Below, piece after piece: positions 26,174 to 61,707 of a stretch of 64,000 bases of DNA (its first letter is position 1; each line of letters begins with the position of its first letter). Under the pieces are notes generated by a model. The model was given only the letters and a program-made list of their open reading frames with translations, ran no database searches and was not told the origin of the DNA. Source of the DNA: Takakia lepidozioides (Eukaryota; Plantae; Bryophyta); NCBI GenBank assembly GCA_030704615.1, contig CM060732.1:75950001-76014000 (forward strand), in the 5' to 3' direction. A program made the translations under genes and the position numbers.

Positions 26174-29100
26174 TGTTGGAGGGAAGGAGGCCTTGACCAG
26201 CAACACTGACGCTGCTGATCTAACTTCTATTTGCTCATGACCGTCTATATCCGAGTTTTTTTTTTGGCAGCTAAATTAGCAAACTGTGTGTTGATCGCCC
26301 AAATGTGATGAGATGCATACTGACTGTACTCGTTTTGCTCGTCAACCTTTTGAGTTTGGTTGCATGCATATTGTCCCAAAAGCTCATGACAATGCGCTGC
26401 ACACCTCAAACGCTTTATATCATGAATGCATACGTATTGGATCCATTTCAATGTGATCCAACACATGCCTATTATCAGAACAAAGGGGAGTCTGCTTTGC
26501 AATTGACTTATGTGGTGGAAATCGCCTCAAAATGAGCAGTTGACATTTGCTGGCAACTTGCTTCCAGTCAGACTCGGGGCAACGTCTAAGTTGGATGTAC
26601 CGGAGCAAAGAGAAGTTATATAAATGTTGAGGCTCTGAAAAGTTATGAGAGAGTTTGTTGTGCGAAAATATGGGTGGTGGATTCAAGTAGTACGTTCTAG
26701 CAACCATTGCATACCCACCTGTGAGTCTCTTGCCTATGATCCTTTCACCCTTTGTCGTCTAACTCATCCCTCTGTCGGGCTATTAGGCATTCAATGCCTT
26801 GGGTATCTCGACGGCGCCGTTATACCAGTATGTACTGACCTTGCATGCTTTAGGTGTACGTGGCTGCATCTTAGTCTGTCCTACTTATGGTGCCAAAGGA
26901 ACTCAGGAACTCAGGGGGATGCTACTGTGAGCACGACGGTCCCTTATCTGCTGCATGATGTAAGAGCTCTCGCATGAACCAAACGAGAAGACGCGGCCTT
27001 GGCTATGGAACACACCCCAGACATATTAAAAGCAACTTCAGTACCCACTCACAACTACCAAGTATGCACGCACTTGGAAAGACTTTTAATACACAGAACA
27101 AAGGGTACTTGGAATACCCAGCAGCATGTATATTAAACGCAACAAGGATCACTGATCCTTACAAGGTCCTTAGGCAAGGACATGCACTCTTCTACAGCTT
27201 GGAGAGACACATTGCACTCACTCAGTCCACTTATGAAGCTCAGCTAGCCACAGGACAAGAGAGAGTGACCAGACTACATCACCAGCCTTAGTGCTACAGG
27301 AATTGGGCAGGAGCCTCGCTCTCATGATGGGTTCCTGTAGCCGCCCTGAATCAAACTGAGCCTGGCTGTCCCGCGGTGGTGGGTGCAGGCACTTCATGCC
27401 GTATAGCCGCGGTAGCTATTTCTGATACTCCCACTCGGGATGAAGTGCCTTCTTCGGATTTGATGCGAACTTCGGTAAGGCCAAGCATTGACTTGAGACG
27501 TTCGAAGCGAGGACGCTGCAGTGGCTTGGTTAGTATATCAACCAACTGGTTGTCTACATGAACATACTCCAGGCGGATAGTGCCCCTGATGTATTCCTCT
27601 CGAATCTTGTGATATTGAACGTCGATGTGCTTAGTCCTGCTGCGAAATTTTGGGTTTCGAACTAAACGGATGACGGCTTGATTGTCGCATAGCAAAGCAG
27701 TCGGTCCTCGCTGCGGATAGTCGAGATCGGAGAAGCTGGCGCATCCATACTATCTCCTTGGTCGCTGGGTATGCGGCAATATATTCGGCCTCTGTGGTGG
27801 TTGTTGCTGTGCATCCCTGCTTCTTGCTACCCCATGCAACGGGTCCACCATTTAGCATGAGAACGAAGCCCGTTCTAGACTTCATGTCATCCAAGTCGCC
27901 GGCATAATCAGCATCGCTGTAGGCCACCAGCTGGTTGGCGGTGTTGTCGTTCGGGGCAGAGTATGTGATGCGGATGTCTAAGTGGCCATGAAGATACTTG
28001 AGCAGGCGCTTGGCGCCGTTCACATGTGGTGTCTTGGGATTCTGGACAAACTGAGCAATCTTGCTTGTCGCGAAGCTGACATCTAGACGGGTACCTGTGC
28101 TTGCAAACAGGACGCTACCAACTACTAGACGGTAGGGAAAACTAGTATTGACTTCATCATCGGTTGTAGAGAAGTACTCAAGGGTGCTACAGGGGTCAGC
28201 TGGCAAAGATATGGGGGCAGCATCTAGAAAGCCATATTTGGCGAGAAATTTGTCGACATAACGAGACTGATCAATCTGTATAGTGCGACGTGCCCTATCA
28301 CGTGTTATCCGCAGCCCTACATATATCTCGGGACTGGACGTTGTGATCTTAAAAGCCTTCCCCATAAATCCGATTATGGTGATGACTCCCATCGTGGTAA
28401 CGTTACAAAGAATACCATCGTCCACAAAGATCATAAGGATCAGCCTAGGGTTGTTGGTGCTACCGTAAACACACGCATCTGCAGACGTCTGGACTAGACT
28501 GTACTTGGTGAGAAAATCATTAAAATGTTGGTTCCAAACTCTACTGGACTGTTTTAGACCGTATAGAGCTTTCTGCAACTTATAGACTTTGCCTGCGGGG
28601 AAAAGATCCTCGAAGCTGATCGGAGGAGCCATGTAGATTTCTTCTGTAATCTCCCCATGCAGGAAAGCTGCAGTGACATCAAACTGGGTCATCTCCAGAT
28701 CTTCTGCGGCAACGATCGATAGTACAGCACGAATCGAGTCGAATTTAACCACCGGACTGAAGGTTTCGTCATAGTCAACCCCTTCTTGTTGTGTAAACCC
28801 TTTCGCCACGTGCCTTGCTTTGTATCGCTTGATGTCTCCTTGCAGATTGTGTTTCAATTTGAACAGTGCCCACTTGTTCTTGACGAGGTTTTTCCCGGCT
28901 GGGAGATCACAAACCGTCCAGGTGTTGTTCTCGATGAGTGCATCATACTCAAACTGCATTGTTGCACTCCAATTGCTGGACTGTGGCGAATTATGTGCTT
29001 CTTGCACTGTGAGTGGCTCCTGGAGTTCGGCTGTAGCTGTGCTCGTGCCACGTACGCCCAGTCGCCATACCTATTGACGGGCTTTCGCTCTCTGCCGCTG

Positions 29101-31499
29101 TATGGATTTAGTGGAGGTGCTGCTCCCACTGGTTCAAATGCCTGTGGTGTACCGTCTGGCTGGACTCCCACTGGCACGATAGCTGGTGATATCTCCTGTA
29201 TGCGCTGCACTCCCACTGATTGCAGTGCAGGCTGGGGTGCGGCTGTACTGATGTGGAACTGTTGATCGACGGTGGAAAGATAAGGGGACTCCATCATTAG
29301 ATCTTCCCACGATGCCAATGTATCGTCTGTGGATCCATCGGGCTGATCAGTGTAGGCGTCACTCCCAGAATTCAGGTGTGCTACCTGATTGCCATTGCTC
29401 TGCTCATCTTGTGAACTGTAGTCACTGCCTGACAAGGTAGTTGGAAGATCTACCGGAGTTGATATCGGATCGGGGGTGGAGTAGATGACGATTGCTCTTG
29501 CGCTGTCTGGTTCCTTGGATAGCCAGCAAGACGATGTCATCGCGCTTGCCTTGTGATTTCCTTCTGTCTTGATCACTGGCAACTGTGTTCAATGAGCCCT
29601 CGTTGAAGATCACATCTCTGCTCTCCATGATCTTCTGTGTGTCGTTATTCCAGATTCGATAAGCTTTGCTCGTGCTGCTATACCCCATAAAGATGCCTGG
29701 CTTGGCTTTGGGGTCTAGCTTCTTCCGAAGCTTGCTGGGCACGTGAACGTAGGCATCTGAACCGAAAACCTTCATGTGCGCAACTGATGGCTTGACTCCA
29801 TGCCAGCTCTCGAAAGGCGTCAGACCAGGTAGTGTACTAGTACCTGTGCGGTTCAGTGTGTAAACGACAGTAGCGACTGCTTCGCCCCAAAATCGCAGAT
29901 GAATATCCGCAGAATATATCATGCTTCTTGCTGCCTCCACTACGGTTCTGTTCTCCCTCTCAGCAGATCCATTCTGCTCCGGTGTATAGGGGCAGGTGAG
30001 CTGTACTTCGATGTTCTTGTCTTCCAAGAACTTGTTCACGGCCTTGCATGCGAACTCGCCACCACGGTCGGATCGTAGTACTCGTATATCGAACCCTGTT
30101 TCTCTGTGCAGAGTTGCAGCGAACTTCTTCAAGCAAGAGAAAACATCAGACTTCTGCTTGATGATGTAGATGGTTCGATAATGCGAGTGGTCATCCTTGA
30201 ACAACACGAAATAAGACGCTCCAGCTACTGTCTTTTTGTTCATGGGTCCACATACATCCGCATGTATGATGCCGCCAATTGTGGCTGCATACACCCGATC
30301 TTCCTTTAGCGGAAAGGGTGCGCGATGAATCTTGCCGAGTACGCATCCAACGCAGAAGCTTGGGTATTGAGTATTGCCGCTCAGCTGCAAACCTTCGACA
30401 AGGTTCTCTGAGACCATTGACCTGATCTGGGCATGGTTCAGGTGGGCACAATCGCTGATGCCAGACGTAGATGTTCTGCGTGCCGCTCTTCTGGGTTTCC
30501 GTTCCAAAGGTGTTGGCAACGTATACTCCAGGGACTGGGACCACAGTCTCGATAAACAGCTTGTACATAGTACCTTCGACGACTCCAGATATGCTCCGGT
30601 CTCTCCGTCTAGAACGAGCTTGCATCCAGACTTGAAGTGTACAGTGTCTATGTTTAACAATGCTGCCTTATAGACAGAAAACAAGTTTCTGCCTATGCCT
30701 GGTACATGCATGACATTGTTCAATACTGCTGGCTCCCACGTCTTGCCGTTAAAAGTGCATATGCTAATGGTCCCAATACCATACACGAGCAGGTTTTTGC
30801 CGCCAATACCTTGTACGTGTCTTTGCTCTTCAGAGATGTCTCTGTATTGGGTGAACCAATAGCGCTTCTCCGTCATGTGGTCAGTACATCCGCTATCGGC
30901 GATCCAAGCATCGCCACTGTCTGTGGCAACTCCGGCGGATGTCATGTATGCGCGATGGGAGTTCTTGGAGTCTTTGCTGGCAGAGCCCTCCGTCGATGTG
31001 TTTGATGTCAGTTTCTTGTCTTTGTCTCCCTCGGTGCACTCGCGAGCCGAGTGTCCAGTCTTACCACACTTCCAACACTCTGTATTCTTCTTCTTGTCAT
31101 TCTTCTTCTTGTCATTGATGTCCTTGCGGCGCTACTGTCTTTCTTGATACGTCATGTTGGAGCGATCTCCTGCCGACTTCCTTTTGGCATTTGCGATGAA
31201 GGCAGAGGCAGGCGAACTTTGCTGCTCTCGTTCTTGAATATCTTTCTCCCGCATCTCCTCCCGAACCAAGCGAATCAGCAGATTGTTCAGCGTCGTCTCA
31301 ACTGCTGCGGTATTGTCCCAAGAAGAATGGAAGTAACTGTAGCAATCAAGAAGGTTTCCAAGGACTTTGGCCATGACATTTGTATTGGCTATGCTAGAAT
31401 CTCCTAGACGCGCTAGCTGTCTCTTTATAACTTCGACTTTACTGATGAATGTTGCTATGCTGTCACCTTGCTCAAACTTGCACTGATAAAACTTGACTT
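26174..31499 (-). mobile_element. Ty1/Copia retrotransposon 2, frameshifted gag-pol, 5' end missing
   Basis: Gag fragment, CWKCGKTGH knuckle, protease WIADSGCTDHM, integrase (IHADVCGP...RSDRGGEF...PEQNGSAERENRT), RT (YKARHVAKGFTQ...YGLKQSSR...FVDD), RNase H (YSDADY...TEAEY...DNQ...TKHIDVQYH). PPT complement CTCCCACT at 27428. The putative 3' LTR is ~26174-27427; its outer edge is uncertain because no second LTR is present to compare. Confidence 0.9.
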
Positions 31500-32499
31500 A
31501 ACAATATTTTAACTAATTATGGACTTTTGTTTGGTCCAGAAATAATATGAGAAATATGAATAAACAAACTTTATTATTGAAATAAAGCGATATATATGAT
31601 TATTTTGGTTATTTTATGCACAATATAATCCTCCAAACATTTTTTGGAGACAATATTATAAGTATGTATTGTGGTTTTAGAATAACATCCACTGCCAAGT
31701 TGACGTTCACAAAAAAAATAGGAGGATGCAATAAATTACACCATGATGTGAGGTCAGATATGTAAAACTTTTTGCACAAAATGGTTGCCATATCATATGA
31801 CATACAAAACCAAACATAGAACAATCATGGCATGTGATGAAGAGGATGCCATGAAAGAATGTGTCCGCATAAATTGATGATAAACATTCATATTTTATTA
31901 GAGATTGCAACTTTGGCGTTGCAGTCAGACATAATGTAACGTCAACTGTACATCCGTTGGACTTAATGTTATCCAGCGACTCGAAGCCATACAACGGCTT
32001 ACACTAACCCATTAATATTACAGAGCCTCCTCCCAAATGGCTCGCAGTCAAGGCATGTGTTCGAAAACGCCTCCGGTTACCACAACCACTTGCAACGGTC
32101 TCCGCACCAGATGAAACGGAAATACTTTCAGAGAACTCGAACCTAATAGTAACATTATCATCCGAAATGTTACTTGGAACTCTACTTGTTGAATCTCTTT
32201 GATGCCCTTGAAGCCTGCCGGGAAGCCCGCCATTCTTGCCAATCACGAAGCTCTTCTTATTCTTTTCGAATTTGCTCCTTGAATGTGACTGGGCAAAATA
32301 ATTTTTCATATGTCAAATGTCAGCTGAAATGTGGAACATTTGTAGAAAAAATGAGAAAGTCAAAGTGCAAGTGGAAGACACTTTTAAGATCAAATTCTCC
32401 ATAAACAACAAACAGTGGGATAAAGGTAATCAAGTTCATTTTGTTGTGGGATCCAAACACGAGGGTCAACATATCTTCCATACCAAGCCCAATAGGCAT

Positions 32500-33920
32500 G
32501 GTCACGACCAATAGGCTTACGAGAACACTTGGCAGGGTTCTCGCTGAAGTAATCTACGACTGTTGAAGCTGCAGCCATTTTCAATATATATGGCCACACA
32601 GCTTTTGTCATATCATCCTGGTCAACCAAGCCCTTTGGTGATGGCTTGTATGAAATAGAGAAGAATCCAGTATTTGGTGGGTTTCAGAGGCCCTTTGTCG
32701 GCTCATCATCGACAAGGAGTATTTGTCCCTACGTTGCAAAGGGTGTACCAGGGTACTTGGCAAGAACAGTGCGAATATCCTTAACGAGATATTTCATCCC
32801 AGCCATGATGTAACCGGTAGTGTCTTTGCAATCCTCAGCTGACCAAAGATGAACGTCGGCTGTCAAGTGGAGGTTAGTGGACGCACCTTGTCGGGAGGCG
32901 CATACAAGAAGTTATGCGGCTCCATACTCGCTTGTATAGAAATTACGGAGTTAGTTTGGGACAGAAAAACAAACTGCAAACGAAAGTGGAGAAATTGTTT
33001 TGAAATGTACCATTGAAGCCTTATTGGAATGTCTTGCAGAAGAACAGTGGATTCCCGGGCTTGGATTGACGAGGCCCCACAACATCCGAGGGAGTCCTCA
33101 AGTGTTTGGAGTCCGCTCTTTTTTTCTTGTCAGCCTTTTGTGCTTTGGAATAATTCCCTGCAGAGGAAGGAAATGGCTCGGGGGCTCTTTTTCGCCTCTT
33201 TGGTGGAGAACATTGTGCGAGCAGTTCAGGGTCACGCTGAGTCGATGTTGGAGATATTTTGCCATTGAACGACGGGAGAAGTGGAGGGGCAACAACAGGC
33301 AAGCACAGAAAATTGTCCCTTGAGCACTCGACATCCTGGATGGAAATAAAACTCAATGAAGGAATAATTTACCTCGGAACTGCATTCCAATGCAGACGTC
33401 ATTTGACATGAAGGTCATAATCTGCAGATTTTCTTACCTGGAGCGACAGATGAATATCAAACCCCAAACTAAGTGAAACTAGGAGAATGAGCAAAGAGCG
33501 AGAAATGAGTTTAAGTCACCTGACTCCTGCGGATTTGGGCTGTCCAACCCTCGTGCTGGGGAGATATGTCAGGAAGAGACGGAAGCAGGTGCAGCGGAGC
33601 CGTAGCCGAGTCCCCGACGGTTGGATAGACCAGACCCTGCGTACTGAACAAGGAGGGTGAGGAATGTTCAGAAAGGTCGATAAAGTCTCCGGGATATTTG
33701 TGTTCTTCACCTTCACCTTGGACTTTATCCGCAGGAGGACCCAAGAGGAGAAGAGTGTCGCCCGCTTCCCGGAAGGACAAGGGTCTGACAGAGGATCCAT
33801 CCTCAATTTGAGCACCATCGTGAACCCTCGGAAAGCCTTCAATACTCCGACTCACTGCTGATCCGGAGGGTTCCTTTAGGGGACTTGAGGAACCGATGAC
33901 GTTGTCAGCATCTCCTTGAA
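32500..33920 (-). pseudogene. Cargo: third FCP1/NIF-like HAD domain (degraded) plus upstream low-complexity linker exons
   Basis: Minus-strand translation ~32880-32520: HLWSAEDCKDTTGY...KYLVKDIRTVLAKYP...ILLVDDEPTKGL*NPPNTG...DDMTKAVWPYILKM. This matches the xLLxDDxxxKxxxNP motif of the other two HAD copies. Contains in-frame stops. Confidence 0.55.
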
Positions 33921-34088
33921 CCTGCCAAAGAGACATAATCATAAATCCGGGAATGCACGAATGCAAACCTCCACTGAACAATGGAGGTCACTAGATATAG
34001 TCTTGTCCCCGTATGAAGGCCTGTATCAGAGTCTTGGGATTGCCCGAAATGTGCGTCAAGAATTCAACTGAAAATGAGTCGAAATGAG

Positions 34089-34209
34089 TATGTTCTCAAT
34101 CGCTCGGCGACACGCATGATCAACAATGCTACAACGTTTCAGATTTGGACGGGAACCAAGCCATCTATTGCTCCCTTGAAGATATTTGGTTGTGAAGGCT
34201 ATGTTCTTG
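34089..34209 (+). mobile_element. ~120-bp Copia integrase fragment used as filler at an inversion breakpoint
   Basis: Translates to YVLNRSATRMINNATTFQIWTGTKPSIAPLKIFGCEGYVLV (Copia IN C-terminal signature). Absent at the equivalent site of copy B. Confidence 0.75.
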
Positions 34210-35043
34210 TGCAAAATCTTGAAGCACTAGAAGAGCTACAATGTCCCCCGGTTTTCAGAATCGGACTACAGAATTCCAGCTCTTGTCGGATTCTGACTGG
34301 TCTTTAGACGAGAGAAATATCGCGAAGTGTGGACAGAGTTGCACAAACACTACCGGTTAGGGATTTGGAGCTCTATGATGTACAAGAACTTGTAGCCCAT
34401 CCTGGATTTTTTGCTTCGTGGTCTATCTCAACCGGCCTTCGTTATGTCTCAAGAGGATTGTATTTCATGTCCTACTTCGGTTCACCCTAAATTCAAATCA
34501 GGATTGGACCCTCCTCATTTGTTTTTGAAGCCACTGGTCAAGGTGTGGAAGGGATTTGGTGGGCAATACACTAAGAGTAACACTTTGCTCATTGACGACA
34601 CCGCCATGAAGTGTGTATTGATCCCGCCCGACTCATGTCTTGTTCTCAAACCGTTCCAGACCGTTGAGACTGATGGTTGCTATCTTCTCAAGGTTCTTCA
34701 GACCTATTTGCTTGGAATGAGGGAACATCCCACTGTTTCAAGCTATCTTAGGAAAAAAATGATAGGGTTGAGTTTTTTTTCCAATGTTTCAAACGATCCC
34801 AAGTTTAGCCCACTCTGGGATTTTATTGAGGACAACGGTTTTAAGAGTCTCAGATATGATGATTCAAAATAAATTATTTTTTATTAATCCCATCTCACTC
34901 GAGCTATTGAATATCTTCATGGTTTCTCTTTTTCATTTCCTTGTAATCACACACGTGAAAGACTCCATTCACGTCAAAAATAATCAAACGCAACCTTTGC
35001 GTAGGAGGAGAAACGGGTGCTCCAATCTGCCAGAGAGTCATTC
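34205..35043. pseudogene. Cargo: second FCP1/NIF-like HAD domain of copy A, broken by an internal inversion (34205-34958 flipped)
   Basis: 34411-34872(+) is near-identical in protein to 48761-49453(-) (NTLLIDDTAMKCVL.PP), while its N-terminus LIIFDVNGV stays on the minus strand at 34960-35043. Confidence 0.85.
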
Positions 35044-35206
35044 ATACTTAGGATGATAAAAGGGAACAGTACAATGCATTGGAAAAACCGACACCAGGAA
35101 AATGAACAAGAACGTCCACTGGACAGCCGAGGTTCACCAAACTCAGTTAAAATATTTTATGTCCCAATGCAGCGGCACGCAACTCGAGATTGCTAAGAAA
35201 CTTCTC

Positions 35207-36331
35207 TCACCTATAATCAAAGTCTCTAAGAAATTTGACCGATGGGTCGTCCTCGAAGAAATCCTTCGAAACGCCAAAAGGATGTAGGTCGTTGAACGGC
35301 ATGACATCCATCCCCGATAACCGGAACATGTTAAGGTGAGGCTTGAGCTCTTCCAGTAGAAATTTATCCCTGTCAGGGTCCACGTGCACCTTATATTTTG
35401 GAAGGAGGATGGTATGTCCTAACGGGTTCAAATAGGACTTGTACATATTGTCTACAGTGTCGATGAGGAGAGTATTGGATTTGTAAGCCGTCGGGTCTTC
35501 CTCAACGGAAATGTCGTAAAGACGTTTAAAGTAGATGGGATTTTTGGAAGCTTTGGGCCATTTTTCATTGAATGTCGATCTATGCATGACGGAATTCTCA
35601 CTGCTGTAAGTTCTGACCTGGGAATAGTACTTCCCGAACACGGCCTTGGCGATAGTCTCGACGTTCATTTCAGGTCCAGTGTTCCAAAAACAAACGGAAA
35701 ACATTTTGACGGCCCACTTAACGAATTCGTCAAGACCGTTTCGCGTAGCTAACTTGAATTTCCCTGCGGAGATACAAGGCTGGGTGGCAGGAGGTATTTT
35801 CTTTCCATCCTTTAGGAAAACCTCACAAAGGTAACCGATGTCCAGAACCAGGACGTAGTATCCTGGCCGACATCCGTTCGGTTCCCAAGGAAGGGAATGC
35901 AGATCGTTTGGATTGACAGAAAGGGAATAGTCGACTAGAGGGTAATGCATGTTGTCCTGTGGAATAACAAAAGAATTCATTATTAATTTCAATTTGAGAA
36001 ATCCCAAAGTAGACAAACGGAAGAATGGAGTTGAAATCATTACCGTTTTTGGAGTAGGCCGCTGAGATCCCTGGGCAGGCTGCTCCTCCTCTTTCCCATC
36101 TCTACGTCCAACGTTATCGTCCTTCTCTGTGGAGCCAGATGGCAACCTCGACTGTCCAGTGGATGTAACTTGTATGACCGGCTCAGATAGAGCGAAAGTA
36201 ATTGTTCGATCCACTCTTCTCTTCACCGTCTCAGTGTCGATAGAGTCGGTCCTTGTGTGTTTGATCTCCTCAGACGTCGTCTCACGCTTTAATCCTGTGT
36301 GTGTCATTTCCTCCGAATTGGATTCTTGGAT
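35207..36331 (-). CDS. Cargo: first FCP1/NIF-like (HAD superfamily) phosphatase-like domain, large exon
   Basis: 366-aa ORF with YVLVLDIGYLC...TRNGLDEFVKW...FSVCFWNT...YFKRL...SNTLLIDTVDNMYKSYLNP. An AG acceptor at 36332-33 joins in phase to an upstream exon ending at 36597. The DxDxT motif is degenerate. Confidence 0.65.
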   Translation of the reverse strand: MQESNSEEMTHTGLKRETTSEEIKHTRTDSIDTETVKRRVDRTITFALSEPVIQVTSTGQSRLPSGSTEKDDNVGRRDGKEEEQPAQGSQRPTPKTVMISTPFFRLSTLGFLKLKLIMNSFVIPQDNMHYPLVDYSLSVNPNDLHSLPWEPNGCRPGYYVLVLDIGYLCEVFLKDGKKIPPATQPCISAGKFKLATRNGLDEFVKWAVKMFSVCFWNTGPEMNVETIAKAVFGKYYSQVRTYSSENSVMHRSTFNEKWPKASKNPIYFKRLYDISVEEDPTAYKSNTLLIDTVDNMYKSYLNPLGHTILLPKYKVHVDPDRDKFLLEELKPHLNMFRLSGMDVMPFNDLHPFGVSKDFFEDDPSVKFLRDFDYR

Positions 36332-36859
36332 CTACAAGAAAAGTTATCCAAATCGGTTAGTGGCTGTCCACAAAGGTGTGCGAACGGAAATATGTATCCG
36401 GGTGGAAATATGTTTTATTCGGAAGTCCAGAAAGACGGATATGGGAAAAACATTGGGATATATATAATTATAATATTGTCATATGGAAATAACATTCGGA
36501 TTATTCCACTCACAAGTATGTATAATTACAATATTGTCATATTGTATTCAGAAGTGTGTACGAATAAACTTTCACTAATTGTCATTCGTTGCCTACATCC
36601 AGAACCAGATCATGGGTGACATTCTGGGACACCAGCTCACGACGATTGTTAACAGGATCCGGTGACATAATCAATGGCTCGTCACATTCCACAGGTGTGA
36701 ACCCTTGACTGAGGGTTTCAACTAACTCCGTGGATGTCGCTTCTTGTCCCTTTGGAGAAGCCGAATTCTTATTCGTGGTGTTATCGGAACTGGAGGAATA
36801 ACTGTCCAGATTGTGTACATCTTGTGGCGCAACGCGTTCTTGGGTATTTGGAGTACTAC

Positions 36860-39800
36860 CTAGATTTCCAATTGTGAAATTTCTTGGCCCTCTCTTTCCC
36901 TTTCCAACATTAGCCGCATCTGCCCCTGGACTCCGTTGACGATTTCTATGTTCTCATCTTCGTCTTTCTCCTCCTCGTCGTCCTCTTCTTGTTTCTCCTC
37001 CATTTCCTCGTCCTGATCCTTGTCCTGTCCTTCGTCATCATCTTCTTCGTCCACTTCGTCATCCTGCAATGAGTCTCCGTCATCTCCGTCTCATGCGATA
37101 GTCTGATTGTCAATCTGGAGGGTCCTGAAATAGGCCTCCACCTTGCTTCTACAAAATTTCTTTTTTGTTACAAAGTTTATGTCGAGCACGCGAATATTTC
37201 TTTCCAGCAATGAAACCAAACAATGATATCAAAATAAATCCGACGAACACCTACCATCGATAGATTGAAATGGTTAGGGTTTCTTTTGAGACAACTACCA
37301 AACATACCAATCTGCATAATAACAAACACCCAAAACACCCACAATTCCAATAACATGAACCTCCACTGCCCAGTGGAGGTTAACAAAATGGAACAATCAG
37401 ACACAGGTTAAACACGCTTTTCCGACAACGTCAATAATACGAGAGTTAAATCCGGAAAACTGAAAACACAGACAATTCCAAGATGCAGAATCCGCTTACA
37501 AGCAGAACGTATGTCATTGCCAGTTCTCCGAAAATGTTCACACAAGACATCCCGTCCCTGCAAAAAAAAAAAACCAGGTAATCGTAGGTGTCCGGTGTCA
37601 GCTCATGATTGTAAGTCCTGCACTCCATCTCCTGCGAGGTCGGGTCTACATCTGGTCCTTGGATAACGGGATTAATTGGGTCCGGCGATAACAAAACAGT
37701 TTGAATGTGGTTGTCCGGATTCACCATCTCCTCAGCTGTTGCCGGAAATACGTAGTCGAGGCAGAGGACCGTCCGGGAGAAAATAGTCGTGCAGCTCTTG
37801 TAAGGTGATTCAAACTTGTCAGGAATGTAATAACCCTATCGGATAATAAACGATTTTGATCCAGGGCCATTCCGGATGTATGACACAAGATTTCCCGATG
37901 ATTTCTGTATGGAGAAAAACACAAAAGCACTGGACATGAGCTGCCGAGCCACAAAAGTATCCAAGATATTTGAGTAGTCCTTTGTCTCGAAGACAACAGA
38001 GTCATCATCACAAACTGTATTGACGAACACCATCGATATGTCGTCGAATTGTTTCTTCGATGCAAGTCCCAACCATGATCTGGCATCAGCAAATTTCTGG
38101 TTCCCTCCCCAGCTGTGTGTAATGGGACCTGAAGCTCGTGCGTAGAATCACCAGGGCATTCTGGTTATCCTCAAAGGTCTGCTTGCACGACAAGTCATAC
38201 TTCTTGAAGGCAACAGTCACTGGCTGCGTCTCCATATTCATCTTATGTTTGCTAACAATGTAGTCGTTCCCGAGCCTATCTCGAAATGTTTCAAACTCAG
38301 CTTTGTTGAAGTTGTATTTTTTTTTAACATCACGCCATTCATGTTTGGTATACGGTTCCGGGTTCTGTCTGCTCCTCCGAGGCCACCCTAAGACTTCCAT
38401 TACATCGTCGATAATAAACCGTCGCAATTTCATTTGGTCAATATACGCGCTCATTGTGTTTTTGGATTTGTCCGCGCCCTTGAATTTCGTTCCCCAAATG
38501 CAAATGTCTCTGTTTAGGATTTTCTCCGCCACTCTTTTCAACTGCCTGGTATTAAATCCTTGCAGTTTCGCGATAGCGGTTTTATTCAGCGGTAGCTGTT
38601 CACCCTTGCACTGAATCTCGAAAATATCAATAAGCTTATCTTGTTCCCACTGTTTGAAAACCTCCTCCCACAGGTTCCATACGTCTTCTTCACAGAGAAC
38701 CAGAACCATGGCCTCTTTCACGCTACTCATCTCTAGTATGAGTTGACATGCTTGCATAAATTCCTACGAAAAATATCAAGGCCAAAGTTAGAAATTTCAT
38801 TCAATATTTGATATTAATCTTGAGATGAAACAATAGTCACAACTATCTTGTCAATTATACTATACACCAAGTGATGATTCGATTGTGAATTCATCTTCGT
38901 CCATCTTGTTGTGCCTTGTAATTTGAAGCTCTTTCTGTAGTGTCTCCTGCCTCGGAATGCGGTGCTCCTCCAAGTCAAATTTGTCCAATTTGTTCATGTT
39001 CTCCACCAGGAACAGTTCTAAGAGTGTACCTAGAAAATCCTTGAAAAACCCAATGAGCATGAAAAGTTTTGGAAGCGTTCTCCGTAACATCACGTTTTCA
39101 TGATCATATGATGTTTCAAGTATTTTTGCGGCACATTTGCGAAACTGTTACAGGTGGAGAACATAAATAGATTGGGAAAATAAGAACTGGACAAGCACCT
39201 CATTACCAAACAAGACACATTACAAAAGACCCTATCATGTCGAATTTCCGAATGTTGAACCATCCTGCTCGTTCATTGTAGCACCCTCCCTCCCTTAAGA
39301 AGCTATTTTTGTACTGTCTACTGCTTCGTAATGCGGTCTCCGTTCGTCACATTAAATCCAAGCTTGAGAATATTTTGGTTCTCTAACAAAAGGAACGGAA
39401 AACACAATGAATCATTTACCTTCCATTGTCTAGTCTCCGACTTCGTTGTGTGATCGTTGTACTTTTTCGGCCTCCCCCTCAGCTCGAAGAAATTTCGGGC
39501 ATGTGCAACTTTCTCGGGAAATGTTGTGTCAAATCTCTGTGCCTTATTCGGGTCGTTTAGGAGCTTAGATAGCTTCACGAGCCTCATCAGATCCTTTGAC
39601 CATATAATCTTTGAGGGCCAATCAGTGTAGTACTTCTTAAGATTGTCATCGTCTACGTCTTGCACAAGTTCCTGCGACAGAATTGAATAAGGTCAGAAAT
39701 GATATTTACCTAACAAGCATGTTGTTTAAAGTTCATGAACCTCCACTGTCCAGTGGAGGTTCATGTTGTTACAAAAATTGGAATTTGTCGGGAGATATAC

Positions 39801-40854
39801 CTTGGCAGCAATGATCGTGTGTTGTCCACCGATGACGAAGAATCTGGAATTTTCCACCTCCTTCCAGTTTCGAGGTTTCGAACTAGAAACCTCCATAGGC
39901 TTCTCGGGGTTTGCGAGAATCAAATAAACTGGATGTTTGGAGTCGAATAACCGGAGCTGGTAAAGATGCGTTTTGACTTCGTCTTTGTGCTTCACATTTA
40001 GGGGCATGTACACCATATCTCTGGGAGCAAGCTCCATCATGGAAACTTTGACGTCCTGGGTCGCCTCAAACCCAAAAAGAAACATGTCATTGTAGTCTTG
40101 CTCCAACCTCTCCAACATCTTCTCACACTTGTCTTTGTTGAATATGTCTGCAGCCTTGGGTTTCTTGGTATCCGTCATGAACGTAGGATCAATCTCCTCC
40201 TTTTGTTTCTTCTTTCCCCCTGATGTACCAGCTTCATTGTCATCACCACCGGCATCAATGGATTTCCGTTTTCCCTTCTTTGGCTTCGCTCTTGCAGCCT
40301 CCTCCTCCCGCGTCTTTGCAATCTCCTTACCCTTTAAGTAAAGCACATCCAAGAAAATACCCCAAGCGATGCAAAAACCTTCATCTGTAAATTGAGTACC
40401 CTCGCCGCAATATGTGAACCCCGCCCGAATGGACTCTCTCATCATGGCCTTCCTTAGAATTCGTACCTCCAGTTTGAAGCCAAACGTTCTGGGAAATCTA
40501 CCATCTTTCATCTTCCATCATGAACATTACCAACATTGGAAATTCCACATCCATCTCCAGCTCTACGTCGACCACATCTGCATATTTGAGCTCGGCGACC
40601 TCTGCACCAATCTTGTATTGGAACCGGAACTTATGGTCCGGAGGTGTGCCAACGGGTACAATGCCCCATTCTGTGATCTCCGGGTTCAGCTCAAAAATTG
40701 CCAGGTGATCATTCTTGAAATTCAGAGATTTTCGAGAAACAAATGAACCATAGATAGGTTTGCACATTCCAACAATACAATCCCTCGGGGTAATGTTGTT
40801 GTCCACAGAACAAACCACCTCGGTCCTCAGACACATATCATGACAACCATACAA
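36860..40854 (-). pseudogene. Cargo: multi-exon ParB/Srx-like domain protein fused to a degenerate N6/N4-methyltransferase-like domain and an acidic tail (copy A)
   Basis: Basic NLS-like KPKKGKRK; ParB-like FFVIGGQHTIIAAK followed by a GT-AG intron (39672-39800). After splicing the intron starting at ~37499 the C-terminal region reads ELTPDTYDYLVFFFCRDGMSCVNIFG(G/E)LAMTYVLL-ERNIRVLDIN, resembling the beta-class MTase xKPxxLxxxLIxxxSxxGDxVLDPFxGSGxTxxAAxxxxRxxIGIE. D/E-rich tail at 36950-37090. The copies have different frameshifts/stops. Confidence 0.55.
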
Positions 40855-41556
40855 GATTCCCAGGAAGTAACCTCCATTGTCCAGTGGAGGTTCAACAATT
40901 CATACGCTCATAGCTGACAGATAAAAGAGTTCAATTCAGGAGGAGAAAACGATTTCACTTATAAGAAGAATAATACATTTATTCAGAGAAGGCTCGTCTC
41001 GCCATTCCATACATCATGCGGTCTCAAAATTGTTCCTATAACGAATATATAATTTCTACAAGAAATCGATATTCTTTTGTAAGATGAGTTTCATCTACAG
41101 GAAAATCTACTTATTTGTCATCTGCATGTTTAGAAATTACAGTCCAATACTCTCCGTCTTCTGTATTTCGTTATATTTGAAGTCGTGGACCTCCACTGGA
41201 CAGTCGCATCAATGCTCACATCCATCCGTCATTACAATTATTCATCCACTTAACCATGTTCATCCACTAATATTCATCCGTCCGACTTTTTCATTTGTAT
41301 CTCATCTAACCTCCAATGTATAGTGGAGGTTATATAATTAGACACAATCTTCAAATGACATGTTCCAGACCAAACAACAATTCCATTTCTATTCTACTTC
41401 TCTGAAACGTTCATACGCGAGTGTATTTCCTTTTATTGAATTGATTCATCTCTGAATATAGTCTTCACTCATATTGCTTTTTACTGTCAGTAAGGTCGTT
41501 ACGGAGGGGTTTCCAGTTTCTTGAACCTCGCGTGTGCAGTGGAGGTTTCGGTGATC

Positions 41557-44063
41557 ATGATTTTAGAGACGGGTCAAAGAGTGTTTCTTACTCTTCCCGG
41601 GTCCTCATCTCCAATAGCCACTGGGGACTGCCTTAATGTCTCCGGGGTTGGGACCTGTCATGGACAACAATTATCTTCCTCAACCATTTCAGTGGTTCTC
41701 ATCTCCTGTGATGAAGCACACTCATTATGTCCTCTTCCTTATGGACATATGGATGCTGACACCTTGAAGGAGGCCATTGGGACCCCGGTGATGTGGAATG
41801 TTGGCGAAGTTCTTGCGGAGAATAACGAGTATCAAGGAGGGCCTAACATGAATCCTGATTTTATGCCGCAAACAAGAGATACTGCCGAGAATTCTGACGA
41901 CAACGAGGATGAATCAAACCACAGACCATCGAAGAGTTCTGGGAATCCGAGCGGAGGACTCGGAAGAAACAACTGGAGAAACTTGCAGTGCGTACTGTTG
42001 GGTGATGATGGGGTTGCACTATTCGAGGGGGGATTCAAGCCTGCATTCCGGACGAGGTGATCCTCAATGACAAACTAGGAGAGGACGATGTTGGAGTTCT
42101 TGTCACCAGAATACTTTCTGGAGGTTCTGGATCTTTGACGTCTCTTGTAAAATGGCCTTTAACAAAAACACGACTTTTGGAAAGTGGGAAACTACTCTCA
42201 AATGATCTGGAGAATTTTATTAGATCCTCTGACAGTATCTTGTACGAAGATCACGAGGCAGGTGTGAAGAAAACGGCGTATCAGCATTTTACGAGAAAGA
42301 AGAGGGATCGAGATTTGGAACACTCCAAAAAAAGAATGAAGAATCTTACTCTGGATGAAGTCCGGTCCGTGAGCAGCAAACCTTGCCGCAGACTTCACTG
42401 CTATTAATATTTTGATTGGCGAAAAACCTTGGCTATCCGTACTTCTTTTTGGGGATCCACTTTCGATGAGAGGAGAGAACACGGACTGAATGTTTCAAAA
42501 CGACTTCACACGGTGATGGAGCTTACGGTCAGTATTCTCTTGAGTTCTGGAAGGGAAATTCAAACTTTACAATTGGTTCTTTGGCACGTTGCCTGCGCCA
42601 GCTGGAGAAGCCAACCTGTCGCGAGTCCAGGAACATTTTCGATTACCGACTTCAAAACGAGTTCTTCGAATCACTTTTAAGAGGTAAATCAAGATGTTTG
42701 GATGCTCTTAAACCCTGCAGGGCAGAAGACAAACGTGGTGCTCGTCCACTTCTGAGAAGACTGTACTTGCAAATGGACAACTCTGCGAAGGACAATAAGA
42801 ACAGATGGATGCTTGCTTTTCTATCCCTCCTGATCGCCAAAGATGTTTTTGAAGAAATCCAGCTAGGGTTCCTAATGGTCGGGGACACCCATGAGGACAT
42901 CGACGGGTTATTCAGCTACCTTTCGAAGAAGCTGAAGGAACGAAGTACCTACATTCTTTCAGATTTGATGAGGTCTTTTATGACCTCGCAAGATCTGCAG
43001 TTCATTCCACAGATTATTCAGGAGGTTCCCGACTTCAAGAATTTTGTCAAGGGCTGTATTCTGGATGGCAAGGAGGCGTTGGTCGGGATTTCAGAGATGC
43101 ACATCTTCCGTTTTTTTAAGGATGCGGAGGGCTGGCCCATCATGAAGTACAAGAAGTCCGCTACTGATTCGGATTGGCTTCCAACAAACAATAGCGTGAA
43201 GATGTGGAAGTCCAATCCTGACGGGACTCCGAAGCTCCTGAAGGAGACCCATACGCCGTTCCAAGGAGACCTATATGGGGAGTCGGGGACGACTCCTCCG
43301 ACAGTCATTCATTAAGAATGGAATAAAAAAATAGAGGGATTTTTGGATGAAATGAATGATGCTTGACGATCATTACAGAGGTCGAATGGAACAATACGAC
43401 CAGTACTAGGGAAACATTCTTGCCGAGCTGGATAAGCCAATTCCAGAAGCTCCCGACCGTATTCAGCTTCTTGAGGGATTCTGGCCAAAAACAAATTGGT
43501 CCAAGAATCATCACAGAGATGGAATCCATCCACATATATTGCCAGATGTGGAAGAAGAGGATGAAATCCTAGAACCTTACTGTGGCCCGAGGTGTGAGCG
43601 ACCAAGAATATCCCTGAATCCGTTCAAGGATATTGAAAAATGGTTTTTTGTGCTCGTTCGCCCTTATGACCCAAGTACGTGCCCGGTCTGGATGGGGGTG
43701 GCAATATCTGACGTGATCCGCGAAAGGGAGGATCCTAATTTCAAGAAGGTGAAGGTGGAGTGGTGGAGACCGAGAAAATGTGGTAACCCAACAGACTTGG
43801 AAAGGTATAGGGACTGTTGGTCAAAACTTTGGGAGTATAACTCGTCAGATCCTTCTCAATGGATCCACGTGAACAATGTTGTGTGGACAATGCCTCCATG
43901 AAAAAATACGACAAAGAATAGCACTAAGAGAATTACTGTCGCCGAAGCAGTGAAGGCGCACGCTAATTTGGAGGAGACTAATCGTCAGTCAGAAAACGAG
44001 TCGTGCGAGCGAGTTCCAGACCAAGGACATATTGTTGAGGTCAACTCCAGTACTTCGATTTAA
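41557..44063 (+). pseudogene. DDE-type transposase, Sola1/DUF7869-like, decayed
   Basis: RRLYLQMDNSAKDNKNRWMLAFLSLLIAKDVFEEIQLGFLMVGDTHEDIDGLFSYLS (the DNxxxxNKN...G[H]THEDID signature). Two N-terminal Tnp1/En-Spm-like domains, a Cys-rich region, and a C-terminal Tudor/SH3-like FVLVRP...PVWMG...VKVEWWRP. Frameshifts near 42030 and 43250, stops, and an apparent internal deletion near 42520-42570. Confidence 0.8.
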
Positions 44064-44759
44064 GAAATAAAATTTTCTTCTCTATATGGCCCTTCTTGTT
44101 TGCATTAGGGGATCTTTTTTCTTATCTTCTTATGTCGCAATGAACCTCGAATGTCCAGTGGACGTTCTCGTCCTTTGTTTCTGGTTTGCTAAAAGCTGGC
44201 CTGCTGTACGTCCTGGTCAACAAAGATGACCCTGTGGGGGAGTTTCGCCTACATAACATATGGATCACAAGAACAAAATGGGCGGGCACGACCACTGGAG
44301 TCTTCAAATTTTGTCAAAGAGGTTTTTAACAACGGAAGAAAATAGCCCCATTTCCAGTCTTTCTCTGAAACATTGGACTTGCTTTTTGCATAACCAATTC
44401 TCCCACTGAAATCTCCCACTAGGAGGAGCCTTACTCAATCGTTGTTGACATACAGTTCTTCAATTTGCCAGTCCTCAAGTTTTTCTATGAGGTTTTATTC
44501 CATTTTCCCTCGAAGCTTTACGACTTTTCTACACCAAATTTTCATTTCATTTTCATACTTCTCATCTTTGGCCCTGGTTTAAGAGGGAATTTCACATGTC
44601 ATTTTCCGTTGTTCAAATTTTAAGCAATTTTTATTTCTCATAGTTTTTATTTGGTGGTCTGACTTTTTATCCTTTCTCATGTTTTCTTCAGATCCATTTT
44701 CTCCCATGAGATCCAGGCGCTTCCAAAAGTCGTTTATAACGCCATTTTCTTTCCAAATC

Positions 44760-46400
44760 TATTCATACCATAACCATAGCCATAACCATAACCATTATGA
44801 TTAATATTGAAATGTCTTATCCCTTCACATTTGCACTAGTTTTTTTCTTTGTTTTGGATTGACATGCATTTAGGCATGTTAAAGTTTGCTTTCTATGTTA
44901 CATCTTAATACTAGGTCCAGGTTCCAACAACGAGTCTTTCATTTAGATACTTGTCCATAATATTAGGTTCTTCATTTTTTTTTGCTTACTAGTACCCTAC
45001 TAACAACACTAAGTTCTAGCGAAGTCTGGAGTTTTCCATAAGGCTTAGTGTTTGTCTATTTTGTAACTTAAACAAAAACCCTAAACCCTTACCCTAAACC
45101 CTTACTAGAAAACCCTAAACATTTATCCTTAACCCAATACCCCAGAACCATTTCCCTTCCCTTTGCAAATGGGAATCAACTATCCATACCATAATTATAA
45201 CCATTTTGGTTATCCAAATCTCTTCAATATAACCAAATTTCCATTTTGTACCATACTAACACACACTAAGTTGTAGCGAGTGCGAGTCTTCCGGCATGTA
45301 TGCTCACCATTTCTGCCTTCAACCCAAGCCCTAAACCCTCGTCGAAAACCCTAAGAAAAACCCTACGCCATTGTTACGTCTAAACCCTTACCCTTCCCTT
45401 GCAACTGGGAATGAAGTATCCATACCATAACCATAATTATTTATGGTTATTCAAATCTCTTCGCCCTTCACCTTGCGCAAGGTTTTGCTTTTGGTTTGGA
45501 TTGACATGCACTTACATTTTTTTATCGAACTTTGCTTTCTATGTATCTTAATACCAGGTTCCAAGGACGAGTCTTTCATTTAAATACTTGTCTGATGCAA
45601 TGACTACACTTCCATAATATTAGGTTCTTCATTTTTATTTTGCTTAGTACTACAGGCTTACTAACAACACTAAGTTGTAGCGAGTGCGAGTCTTCCGGCA
45701 TGTATGCTCACCATTTATGCCTTCAACCCAAACCCTAAACCCTCGTCGGGAACCCTAAACAAAACCCTACGCCATTGTTACGTCTAAACCCTTACCCTTC
45801 CCTTGCAAATGGGAATGAAGTATCCATACAATAACCCTATGTATCTTCATACCAGAATCTAAGGACGAATCCTCAATCTAAATACTTCTCCGGCCCAACG
45901 ACTCTTCCATAATATTTGTTTCTCCATTTTTATTTTTATTTTTTATCCTACTAACACACACCAAGTTCTAGCGACTGTGAGTCTTCCACATTTGTTTGTC
46001 CAATAGTGTTCTTAAACCCCAACCGAAAAGCCTACCTATACCATCACCCCTAAACCATTAATTTTACCATAAACCAATAATTTTAGTGTACTACCCTAGT
46101 TACACTCCAAACCTTACCATGTTACCTCTTTTCAATGTTTCATGCTCTTTTAATAAAAAATTTGTTGGATAAGGTATGATAAAATGATTACAATGATATC
46201 AAATTCATCAACCATTTCTTAATTCTACCGAGTGTAAGTCCATCATATTTGTTTGTCCTTTTGTACCCTAAATCTAAACCCTAAACCCTTACCCTTACCG
46301 TAAACCCAAACCTTATTACACTTCTCTCTAGTTACACCCCAAACCTTATTGTACTACCCTAGTACCTCTTCCGAATGTTTCATGCTATTCTAATATTTTA
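44760..46400. repeat. Subterminal degenerate tandem repeats (~240-420-bp units) containing telomere-like AAACCCT runs
   Basis: Blocks CATACCATAACC, TTGGATTGACATGCA, CCATAATATTAGGTTC, CACTAAGTTGTAGCG, AAACCCTAAACCCT and TTCCCTTGCAAATGGGAAT recur 2-4 times in the same order. Confidence 0.8.
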
Positions 46401-46950
46401 CTGCCCTTGTCACATCCAAAACATGATTCATTCCAATGGCATGGTATGTAAACATTGTGCTTCATATGAAGATTCAATCAATAAAATTACTAGCAAGTTG
46501 TATCGAGTATGGTAGAGTAGGAGTTTGGCCCATGTTCGATGCGACCCATTTGTTTATCGTGATCCTACAATGGAATATCACTTTATTCGACTTCCAAGTG
46601 GACGTTCAATGAATTGTTCAATATTGCTACTTCACATTGAGCACTTCAATGTCAAATGGACCTCTTATATGACACATTTTGAAACAAGTATGACATCACA
46701 TGAAATTTCACAAAGTTCAATCATACATTACACCATGATATTATTAATATTTCAATTAATTTTAATACAAATATATATTAAGTTTAGTCCAGATTTAAGC
46801 CAAAAGTCCAGAATGAATTAAAATAGGGTTCGAGGAAGGAAATGGCTCGGGGGCTCTTTTTCGCCTCTTCGGTGCAGAACATTGTGCCAGCAGTTCAGGG
46901 TCACGCTGTGTCGATGTTGGAGATGTTTTGTCATTGAAAGACGGAGGAGT

Positions 46951-47791
46951 CGCTACAACAGATCGCGGTATTTATCACTGTATATATGACTATTCTGCAG
47001 TCATAAACGGTATATATGACTTCTATGACTGTAAGTCGTGCAAACCAAGTGAATACAATGAGTATATGATGGTATGGTCCAGATGACTACAGTCAGATGA
47101 ACCAAGTGATATCTGTCACTGCAATCATATATACCATACTGCAGTCGCCGCTGCCGCGCCACGTGGCGATGCGCAATTGATTATTATTATTTAAATAAAA
47201 ATAAAAATAAAAATGTCAGACGCCACGTCGCTCCGCGTTGCACCACGTGGCATAATGCAATTTTATAATAATAATAATAATAAACCACGTGGCAGCCCAT
47301 CTAGTGTATCACGTGCTATCTCTAACTCGTCTACTAACCCTAGGGCCATCATATCCATTTGATTGTGCTTAGAGGAGTTTGAACCTACAACCTCTTTGCT
47401 ATAAGATTTATAGTTCACTACCTGCTAACCAATACACCCATTGTTCATTCATGTGATCATATGGTGTTTTAATTGTATTATACACACCAAATTACAAAAT
47501 CCCCAGTAGTCCTCATGACTATGTAATCTCATCCATGTGCACTGTAGTCATGGAAATGACTATGAGTGGTGAGCAAAATCTGGTCAATTGTCGTTGACCA
47601 GCCTTCCGCTCATTCCGGAGCGATGTAGTCATACAAACGACTATTTAGATAGTCGTTCATATGACTATAGTCGTACGAACAACTGCGGGAGGTCAATTTC
47701 ATATAAAAAACATGGTGCAGTCATAGTCAAAGTCAGGAAAACCATGACTACCGCGGGTTGGCAGTCATAACTACTACAATCTGTTGTAGTG
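46951..47791. mobile_element. Non-autonomous CACTA/EnSpm-like element (841 bp) inserted in copy B
   Basis: TIRs CGCTACAACAGAT ... ATCTGTTGTAGTG (=CACTACAACAGAT, 1 mismatch), flanked by GAGT on both sides. Empty site in copy A at ~33275-33285. Many ATGACTA/TAGTCAT subterminal motifs. Confidence 0.88.
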
Positions 47792-48760
47792 GAGTGGAGG
47801 GGCAACAATAGGCAAGCACACGAAATTGTCCCTTGAGCACTCGATATCCTGGATGGAATGAAAACGCAACGAAGGAATAATTTACCTCGGAACTGCATTC
47901 CAATGCAGACGTCGTTTGACATGAAGATCATAATCTGCAGTTTTTTTTACCTGGAGCGACAGATGAATATCAGACCCCAAACTAAGTGAAACTAGGAGAA
48001 TGAACAAGGAGCGAGAAATGAGTTTAAGTCACCTGACTCCTATGGATTTGGCTGTCCAACCCTCGTGCTGGGGAGATATGAGTGGACGAGACGGAACTAG
48101 GTGCAGCGGAGCCGTAGCCGAGTCCCCGACGGTTGCCCTGTGGGTTGGATAGACCAGGCCATGCGTACTGAACAAGGAGGATGAGGAATGTTGAGAGAGG
48201 TCGATAAAGTCTCTAAGATATTTGTGTTCTTCACCTGCATCTTGGACTTTACACCCAGGAGGACCCGAGAGGAGAAGCGACCGTTTCCCGGAAGGAGAAA
48301 GGTCTGACAGAGGATCCACCCTCAATTTGAGCACCATCGTGAACCCTCGGAAAGTCTTCAATACTCCGACTCACTGCTGATCCGGAGGGTTCCTTTAGGG
48401 GACTTGAGGAACCGATGACGTCGTCAGCATCTCCTTGAACCTGCCAAAGAGACATAATCATAAATCCGGGAGTGCAAGAATGTGAACCTCTACTGAACAT
48501 TGGAGGTCACTAGATATAGTCATGTCCCCGTATGAAGGCCTGTATCAGATTCTTGGGATTGCCCGGAATGTGCGTCAAGAATTCAATTGAAAATGATTGA
48601 AAATGAGAGTACCATATCTATCACGTGTGTGCTTACAAGGAAATGAAAATCAGAAACCATGAACATATTCAATAGTTCAAGTGAGATGAGATTGATAAAA
48701 AATAATTCATTTTGAAGCATCATATCTGAGACTCTTAAAACCGTTGTCCTCAATAAAATC

Positions 48761-49453
48761 CTAGAGTGGGCTAAACTTCGGATTGTTTGAAACATTGGGA
48801 AAAAAACTCAACCCTATCATTTTTTTCCTAAGATAGCTTGAAACAGTGGGATATTTCCTCATTCCAAGCAAATAGGTCTGAAAAACCTTGAGAAGATAGC
48901 AACCATCAGTCTCCACGGTCTGGAACGGTTCGAGAACAAGACATGAGTCGGGCGGGTTCAATACACACTTCATGGCGGTGTCGTCAATGAGCAGAGTGTT
49001 ACTCTTGGTATATTGTCCACCAAATCTCTGCCAGACCTTGACCAGTGGCTTCAAAAACAAATGAGGAGGGTCCAATCCTGATTTGAATTGAGGGTGAACC
49101 AAAGTAGGACATGAAATACAATCCTCTTGAGACATAACGAAGGTCGGTTGAGGTAAACCACGAAGCAAATAATCCAGGATGGGCTGCAAGTTCTTGTTAA
49201 TCATAGAGCTCCAAATTCCTAACCGGAAGTGTTTGTGCAACTCTGTCCACACTTCGCGATATTTCTCCCGTCTAAAGACAAGTTGGAATCCGACAAGAGC
49301 TGGAATTTTGTAGTCCGATTCTGAAAACCGGGAGACATTGTAGCTCTTCTGGTGCTTCAAGATTTTGCACAAGACTCCATTCACGTCAAAAATAATCAAA
49401 CACAACCCTTGCGCAGGAGGAGAAACAGATGCTCCAATCTGCCAGAGAGTCAT
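48761..49453 (-). CDS. Cargo HAD domain 2 (FCP1/NIF-like), copy B, original orientation
   Basis: LCLIIFDVNGVLCK...FRLGIWSSM...FVMSQEDC...FLKPLVKVW...YTKSNTLLIDDTAMKCVLNPP, the typical plant FCP1-like DxNG variant. Premature stop at 48761 relative to copy A. Confidence 0.75.
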   Translation of the reverse strand: MTLWQIGASVSPPAQGLCLIIFDVNGVLCKILKHQKSYNVSRFSESDYKIPALVGFQLVFRREKYREVWTELHKHFRLGIWSSMINKNLQPILDYLLRGLPQPTFVMSQEDCISCPTLVHPQFKSGLDPPHLFLKPLVKVWQRFGGQYTKSNTLLIDDTAMKCVLNPPDSCLVLEPFQTVETDGCYLLKVFQTYLLGMRKYPTVSSYLRKKMIGLSFFPNVSNNPKFSPL

Positions 49454-49569
49454 TCATACTTAGGATAATAAAAGGGAACAGTACAATGCATTGGAAAAAC
49501 CGACACCAGGCAAGTGAACAAGAACGTCCACTGGATAGTCGAGGTTCACCAAACTCAATTAAAATTATT

Positions 49570-61500: not shown

Positions 61501-61707
61501 GCACTGGCAACCACACGGCAGGTGCCATCGCCTCCATGACTTTCTAGCATGCAGTCCCAGTGGTGAATGGCAATGTTATTTGTGTTCTCTGCAGGCTACG
61601 AGCCATATCTTCTAACAAAACATCAGCTATAGTCAAGCTTTATGGGCTCTAGCCACACAGTTGATGGATGCAAAGAGGCCTGGAGACCTTAACCAAGCCT
61701 TGATGGA

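Follow-up and report, generated by a model that had tools for sequence, protein, structure and literature searches.

Anatomy of the element

The stretch analysed here (the window) comprises 64,000 nt of the Takakia lepidozioides genome (assembly GCA_030704615.1, CM060732.1:75,950,001-76,014,000, plus strand). At 31500-46830 lies a Sola1 DNA transposon that encodes a DUF7869 transposase and, divergent from it, a cargo gene with introns; it also holds 11 palindromes. We refer to this element as copy A and to the sister element beside it as copy B (Table 1). Copy A is a decayed, non-autonomous member of a multi-copy family of giant Sola1 elements, and its identity and anatomy are, with high probability, those of a family in which one spliced accessory gene lies opposite the transposase.

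Pfam DUF7869 matches the transposase at 42470-43312 (E = 2.9e-37), and the motifs DNSAKDNKN (at 42776) and GDTHEDID (at 42881) are present. In a by-eye comparison, QMDN..KDNKN and MVG(D)THEDID of the window match QVDN..ENKNN and MVGHTHIQID of Sola1-1_Ec32, an element of the brown alga Ectocarpus. Relative to two related loci, L054 and L056, a deletion of 0.9-1.0 kb near 42500-42550 removes the first catalytic Asp together with its motif, HDKMD. This motif is retained in both relatives, and copy A has no intact catalytic triad. It is because of this missing segment that copy A is classed as non-autonomous.

The two terminal inverted repeats (TIRs) were identified as an inverted pair by alignment. 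The depth of public contigs from this organism across 46837/46838 drops approximately 5.8-fold (X1) and 3.5-fold (X3), and one public contig has a loose end at 46831; the right end is therefore a real, highly repeated family terminus. Sola1 elements have a target-site duplication (TSD) of 4 bp with an AWWT preference (PMC3845634). No TSD is found in the flanks of copy A, which read ACTT on the left and CGAG on the right. The right flank is the inside of the sister copy, and the two ends thus come from different junctions. Alternative ends at 31510/46820, which have AWWT-like flanks, were dropped since the alignment and the loose contig end reach 46830/46831.

Copy B is 91-94% identical to the corresponding part of copy A. 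A 758-bp piece holding the second of three NIF domains is inverted in copy A, and the same domain stands in gene orientation in copy B at 48617-49453. The simplest account would be that copy A inserted into copy B, after which either the left arms recombined or an adjacent deletion occurred.

The palindrome is 24 bp long and reads AACCTCCACTG-NN-CAGTGGAGGTT. When sites are counted at up to 4 mismatches, there are 11 in copy A, 6 in copy B and none elsewhere in the 64 kb, with 0.03 expected from shuffles. Spacing in copy A is mostly 1.0-1.2 kb, and a decayed half-site lies near 46590. Some of the sites are intronic (39738, 37358), and others fall within coding sequence (36144).

A preliminary description of this locus had named imperfect 30-bp TIRs, a Sola1/DUF7869-type transposase on the plus strand, a divergent, intron-bearing cargo on the minus strand and a palindrome specific to the family, all of which are borne out by the observations above. 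It had also taken the second copy as a sign that the cargo block moves as a unit; we find instead a truncated sister element.

Table 1. Coordinates of the features of copy A, copy B and associated sequences in the window
Feature	Position	Strand	Remarks
Left TIR, 30 bp, imperfect	31500-31529	+	Interrupts Copia gag open reading frame (ORF)
Palindrome starts, copy A (span 31684-44166)	31684, 32852, 33966, 35111, 36144, 37358, 39738, 40869, 41308, 41524, 44143
NIF/HAD-like domain 3	32393-32911	-	Two stops; local NIF profile
NIF/HAD-like domain 2	34205-34962	+ (inverted in copy A)	FDVNG; Pfam NIF E = 9.5e-8
NIF/HAD-like domain 1	35210-35900	-	Pfam NIF E = 9.8e-7; LDIG replaces DxDxT
Cargo acidic low-complexity stretch	36863-37090	-
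Cargo region at the position of a beta-class N4/N6 methyltransferase	37500-38147	-	Motif-I-like C-terminus only, no DPPY
Cargo middle region	38161-38763	-	Conserved in peat-moss-type loci; candidate DNA-binding part
Cargo exon, second half of ParB/Srx-like domain	39417-39671	-
Cargo exon, first half of ParB/Srx-like domain	39801-40517	-	GGQHT; Arg of GxxR replaced
Cargo N-terminal region, fold unassigned	40501-40899	-	Frameshifted into next piece in copy A
Sola1 (DUF7869) transposase pseudogene	42009-43898	+	Stops, frameshifts, internal deletion
Subterminal block, internally repeated	44771-46395	+	Telomere-like CCCTAAA words abundant
Right TIR	46801-46830	-	25/30 match to left TIR; ends GGGTT
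Copy B, truncated sister	46832-55707	+	Matches 33163-41096; six palindromes at 48485, 49523, 50556, 50905, 54355, 55480
CACTA-type non-autonomous element, unrelated, high-copy, inserted in copy B	46945-47792		Empty sites in other copies (joints in public contigs)
Short ORF, SP-x-Y repeats (24-bp tandem units)	55736-55963	-	Directly upstream of copy B cargo, absent from copy A

Domains of the accessory gene

Searches with the spliced cargo were run one exon at a time. On the minus strand, a canonical GT-AG intron (39800-39672) splits the ParB-like domain, and the first of its two exons has 18 relatives among 1.84 billion proteins. In the family of the homologue P0116, the domain is unsplit, and both window exons align to this protein. 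An AlphaFold model of P0116 residues 362-553 (predicted local distance difference test, pLDDT, 73.5) has the ParB/Srx superfamily for all of its top 11 structural matches, including KorB (Z 7.9, root-mean-square deviation 3.0, 96 aligned) and PadC (Z 7.6), and Foldseek matches it to Caulobacter ParB (E = 4.2e-5). The Atlas features DUF3723, ParB_N and DUF6551 are common to the window and the homologue. On the basis of this model, the cargo is predicted to contain a ParB/Srx-fold domain, the fold itself being established on P0116. The GxxRxxA motif for binding cytidine triphosphate (CTP) is absent, the aligned homologues that reach that column having GQHT/S/I/M. Taken with established knowledge of ParB proteins, we infer that a canonical CTP clamp is doubtful because the GxxR arginine is replaced. 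Pfam and PHROGs gave no helix-turn-helix (HTH) match for 38089-38763, and neither the ParB nor the methyltransferase (MTase) region of the window was recognised in sequence searches with Pfam, PHROGs, NCBIfam and PDB.

The positionally equivalent exon of Riccia sorocarpa matches Pfam N6_N4_Mtase (E = 9e-4, below the gathering score), aligns by hhalign at 90% probability and matches M.RsrI (E = 0.005). It carries a motif-I-type LDFFSG, and motif I is eroded in the window. Motif IV, (D/N/S)PP(Y/F), is absent from the window, Riccia, L007-type and peat-moss-type sequences inspected. When the MTase-like region of the window or of the L007 type was compared with nine real N6_N4 MTases, hhalign probability was below 1%. 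Judged by its position and the eroded motif I, the window region is probably a degenerate MTase domain, and it is the weakest part of the anatomy.

NIF domains 1 and 2 score above the Pfam cut-off. For the third, whose two stops were replaced by X, the local NIF profile gives 19 bits, compared with at most 2.5 for 1000 shuffles. UBLCP1 matches the NIF region with E = 0.0036. None of the three retains DxDx(T/V), the second catalytic Asp being gone in each, and homologues have DING, DLER, DLNA or DLNR at the DxDxT position. A homologue search with domain 2, in a mode that sees only proteins of similar length, found none.

Of the domains that the preliminary description had assigned to the cargo, the ParB-like part finds its counterpart in P0116. 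The three HAD phosphatase-like domains are recovered by sequence profile, two by Pfam and one by the local profile, and have lost their second catalytic Asp. Profile searches give no statistical signal for the MTase similarity in this copy. The description had further suggested chromatin or transcription effectors; with their catalytic motifs degenerate, the MTase and phosphatase parts read as probable pseudo-enzymes.

Across 1243 cargo codons compared between copies A and B, the nonsynonymous difference (pN) is 0.036, the synonymous difference (pS) is 0.092 and the non-coding difference is 0.083 (p = 1e-9; pN/pS 0.39). The low pN relative to pS indicates that purifying selection maintained the cargo during the family's active period. 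No RNA record carrying the element was found, a result that need not mean silence. An imperfect 300-bp self-complementary stretch lies in the cargo of both copies (38930-39229 and 53579-53868), with one arm continuing an open frame and the other an inverted duplicate. The SP-x-Y ORF upstream of the copy B cargo resembles, in its repeats, a mimic of the RNA polymerase II carboxy-terminal domain (CTD) and is possibly a CTD-like exon of the element; a simple pattern search of the fetched loci returned no repeat of this type.

Relatives in other genomes

One relative is found in Riccia sorocarpa (L055, CM100796.1:28519408-28540970): a well-preserved element, annotated as hypothetical genes only, in which a ParB/MTase-like/NIF cargo is divergent from a Sola transposase and another palindrome occurs 18 times. 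The same divergent layout is found on a JGI contig (L056), with 24 copies of yet another palindrome. The ParB exon is also present in 33 AT-rich JGI loci, which we take to be peat-moss DNA and many of which are one locus in several samples; it is often accompanied there by the middle region, an MTase-like region, up to 3 NIF domains and a third palindrome. Among these JGI loci, the Sola transposase is convergent to the cargo at the locus represented by L015-17 and divergent at that of L025. Loci L007-L010 have an intact ParB gene and a fourth palindrome; no NIF domain was detected in them, and their short contigs hold no transposase. Altogether, we count at least seven families, each with a different palindrome.

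In L004 (10001-19500), a ParB and NIF cargo is convergent to a CACTA transposase (Transposase_21, DUF4218). The cargo may be common to two superfamilies, or this may be plain adjacency; a stretch that had suggested a common end is in fact the third NIF domain, and no longer speaks for a cargo riding on the CACTA element. We withdrew an initial classification of L001-L003 as cargo-free Sola elements, and with it the conclusion that the palindromes belong to the transposase: the fetched DNA does not reach the left element ends of these loci or of L054, and in L003 a ParB gene is present together with a second type of palindrome.

Two further observations concern these loci. L003:270-12650 and L054:253-12512 form a 94%-identical 12-kb composite with a Harbinger-type transposase and a 69-bp tandem array upstream of the Sola transposase. 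In L002 (650-900), the family palindrome occurs as a tandem array of 28-bp period, 9 kb upstream of the transposase, comparable to the tandem inverted repeats of Plavaka elements.

Other elements in the window

The remainder of the window contains several further features. A 7-kb element with inverted ends of approximately 250 bp (13742-20818) holds a 2-kb fold-back at 17271-19324, the arms of which are approximately 76% alike. The Copia retrotransposon whose gag is cut by the left TIR (27631-31497, minus strand) retains long gag-pol pieces, but no 5' part of it was located within the 64 kb. A 1.65-kb AT-rich non-coding element with inverted ends, similar to a miniature inverted-repeat transposable element, lies at 56627-58283. 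Finally, 61100-63921 holds a decayed B-box-like fragment (CONSTANS-like by eye) and, after it, a PPR pseudogene that contains tandem duplications of 375 bp.

Possible roles of the cargo and palindromes

The predicted product of the accessory gene comprises a ParB/Srx-fold domain and three NIF/FCP1-like pseudo-phosphatase domains, with a conserved middle region and a degenerate beta-class MTase-like domain between them. We give about even chances to a model in which a dimer of this protein sits on the family's own palindromes along the element, forming a self-recognising scaffold that would keep the element transcribable or guarded against host silencing, by binding and not by catalysis. Binding or scaffolding is the likelier mode of action because the MTase, phosphatase and CTP motifs are all eroded. 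By analogy to VANDAL elements, anti-silencing would be the most plausible purpose.

Several observations weigh against this model. The ParB fold is derived from a homologue of approximately 32% identity, with Z scores below 8, and the first ParB exon folded alone gave a pLDDT of 60 and no meaningful structural match, a poor result that we attribute to the intron splitting the domain. No statistical link joins the MTase-like region of the window to real MTases or to the Riccia exon. The palindromes of the two copies differ at 7/120 bases, which is not clearly below the non-coding divergence (8.3%), and one palindrome is lost in copy B. Furthermore, the Sola transposases of L001-L003 and L054 are surrounded by palindromes of their own, and the 10 kb upstream of them contain no ParB gene.

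This last observation lends itself to another explanation, in which the palindromes are binding sites of the transposase, serving as internal enhancers that pair far-apart ends or in autoregulation, and the cargo does something else. We regard this as a substantial possibility, short of an even chance. In the four loci just named, the family-specific palindromes cluster upstream of and inside the transposase gene; in L001, a second palindrome type lies directly upstream of a second Sola transposase, and the L003 palindrome and the L002/L003 terminal motif have TCTGG/TCCAG half-words in common. However, these elements extend past the fetched flank, where a ParB gene may lie, and the second palindrome type is also found upstream of the ParB gene in L003. 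Moreover, ParB loci without a transposase on the contig (L007-L010, L020-L036) carry 6-19 palindromes each, and the ParB gene of red-algal Plavaka elements is paired with inverted-repeat arrays (10.1101/2025.02.11.637652). Because ParB loci here are ringed by palindromes, and because the red-algal arrays accompany a ParB gene on another transposase superfamily, we favour the accessory protein as the putative palindrome binder, at roughly even chances.

That the protein is instead an active enzyme, marking its own element with N4-methylcytosine (4mC) or N6-methyladenine (6mA), has been proposed for Ectocarpus Sola1-1 (PMC12477816), and the N6_N4_Mtase-like Riccia exon with its motif-I-type sequence is in keeping with such a role. 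The missing (D/N/S)PP(Y/F) in every sequence type inspected and the eroded motif I of the window make it quite improbable here. Least probable is a chance nesting of a transposase-only Sola element with a separate cargo-only element. The locus is heavily rearranged and without a TSD, and the cargo is convergent in some loci, divergent in others and beside a CACTA transposase in L004. Against this, a single palindrome family spans the cargo, the transposase and both ends in the window, L055 and L056, and the pairing of transposase and cargo recurs in at least 4 lineages. Chance nesting is very unlikely because the same layout recurs in relatives, both in Riccia sorocarpa and in metagenome contigs. 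The single giant Sola1 family envisaged in the preliminary description, with transposase, ParB-like cargo, NIF domains and palindromes linked, thus reappears in L055, L056, L015-17 and L025.

A more far-reaching version of the scaffold model, which we consider unlikely, is that each Sola1 family of bryophytes develops a protein-palindrome code of its own, with a ParB-fold accessory protein recognising the palindrome of its family, and that the three pseudo-phosphatase domains (with the SP-x-Y ORF in some copies) engage the RNA polymerase II CTD machinery, forcing transcription against silencing. If true, it would represent a second land-plant anti-silencing system, independent of VANDAL.

Comparison with known systems

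The preliminary description knew of no account of this combination, yet closely similar elements have already been published in Ectocarpus and in red algae. Sola1-1_Ec32 is a Sola1 element of 21.5 kb; on the strand opposite the transposase, it has a gene for a 1104-aa ParB and N4C/N6A methyltransferase protein, proposed as a possible new class of accessory protein that would bind and modify the element carrying it (PMC12477816, Genome Biol 2025). The best blastp match of its transposase is Physcomitrella Sola1-1_PP (PMC12477816). The window element has in common with it the giant Sola1 form, the ParB-bearing accessory gene opposite the transposase, the transposase motifs and the self-binding hypothesis, and the Ectocarpus termini (AACCG/CGGTT) are similar to the end of the window's right TIR. 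The Ectocarpus element differs in its brown-algal host and its 282-bp TIRs; NIF domains are not reported for its protein, and dispersed palindromes go unmentioned in the passages searched; in the window, it is the MTase part that is degenerate. In Physcomitrella, Bao et al. in 2009 reportedly described Sola1 elements of approximately 15 kb with an opposite-strand, multi-exon, NIF-bearing second ORF and scattered palindromes of approximately 20 bp. If so, the greater part of the anatomy dates back to that account, in which the ParB assignment was lacking. A review of giant transposons makes no mention of Sola (PMC6431247).

In the red alga Bostrychia, the Plavaka (EnSpm/CACTA) elements, which have the accessory genes PAG2 and PAG3, carry a ParB-oxygenase gene beside inverted-repeat arrays, for which binding to the own element was proposed, and the accessory cassette moves between transposon superfamilies (10.1101/2025.02.11.637652). 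The likeness lies in a ParB-domain accessory gene within a giant DNA transposon with inverted-repeat sites. The Bostrychia elements differ in their transposase superfamily, in the fusion of ParB to a 2-oxoglutarate (2OG) oxygenase, in having the methylase as a separate gene with a SET domain, and in repeats that are tandem, whereas those of the window are dispersed.

The anti-silencing system VANDAL/VANC of Arabidopsis is named as the only case in which an accessory protein has been demonstrated to bind the transposon that encodes it (10.1101/2025.02.11.637652). Such self-binding, shown for VANC, is what we infer for the Takakia family. VANDAL elements differ in their Mutator-like transposase, and we know of no ParB fold in VANDAL/VANC. 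The bacterial ParB-parS systems (Spo0J, KorB, Noc) are similar in the ParB/Srx N-terminal fold predicted here and in palindromic candidate sites. Unlike them, the elements described here have lost the GxxR Arg (replaced by T/S/I/M among homologues covering the column) and have no ParA and no detected ParB-type HTH, and no close prokaryotic family for the ParB-like cargo was found with Pfam, PHROGs and NCBIfam.

The Takakia element is therefore not a new system but the land-plant form of one that has been published from algae; what is new is the land-plant version itself, the NIF domains and the family-specific palindromes. The algal ParB-domain accessory proteins were proposed in 2025, without functional tests, to form a new class of factors that bind and modify their own giant transposons, and the class now extends to land plants, including the chromosome-level assembly of Riccia sorocarpa. 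Matched pairs of protein and site make the self-recognition hypothesis testable by swaps in genetically tractable plants, and offer a direct way to ask whether self-marking and self-protection occur in transposons beyond VANDAL.

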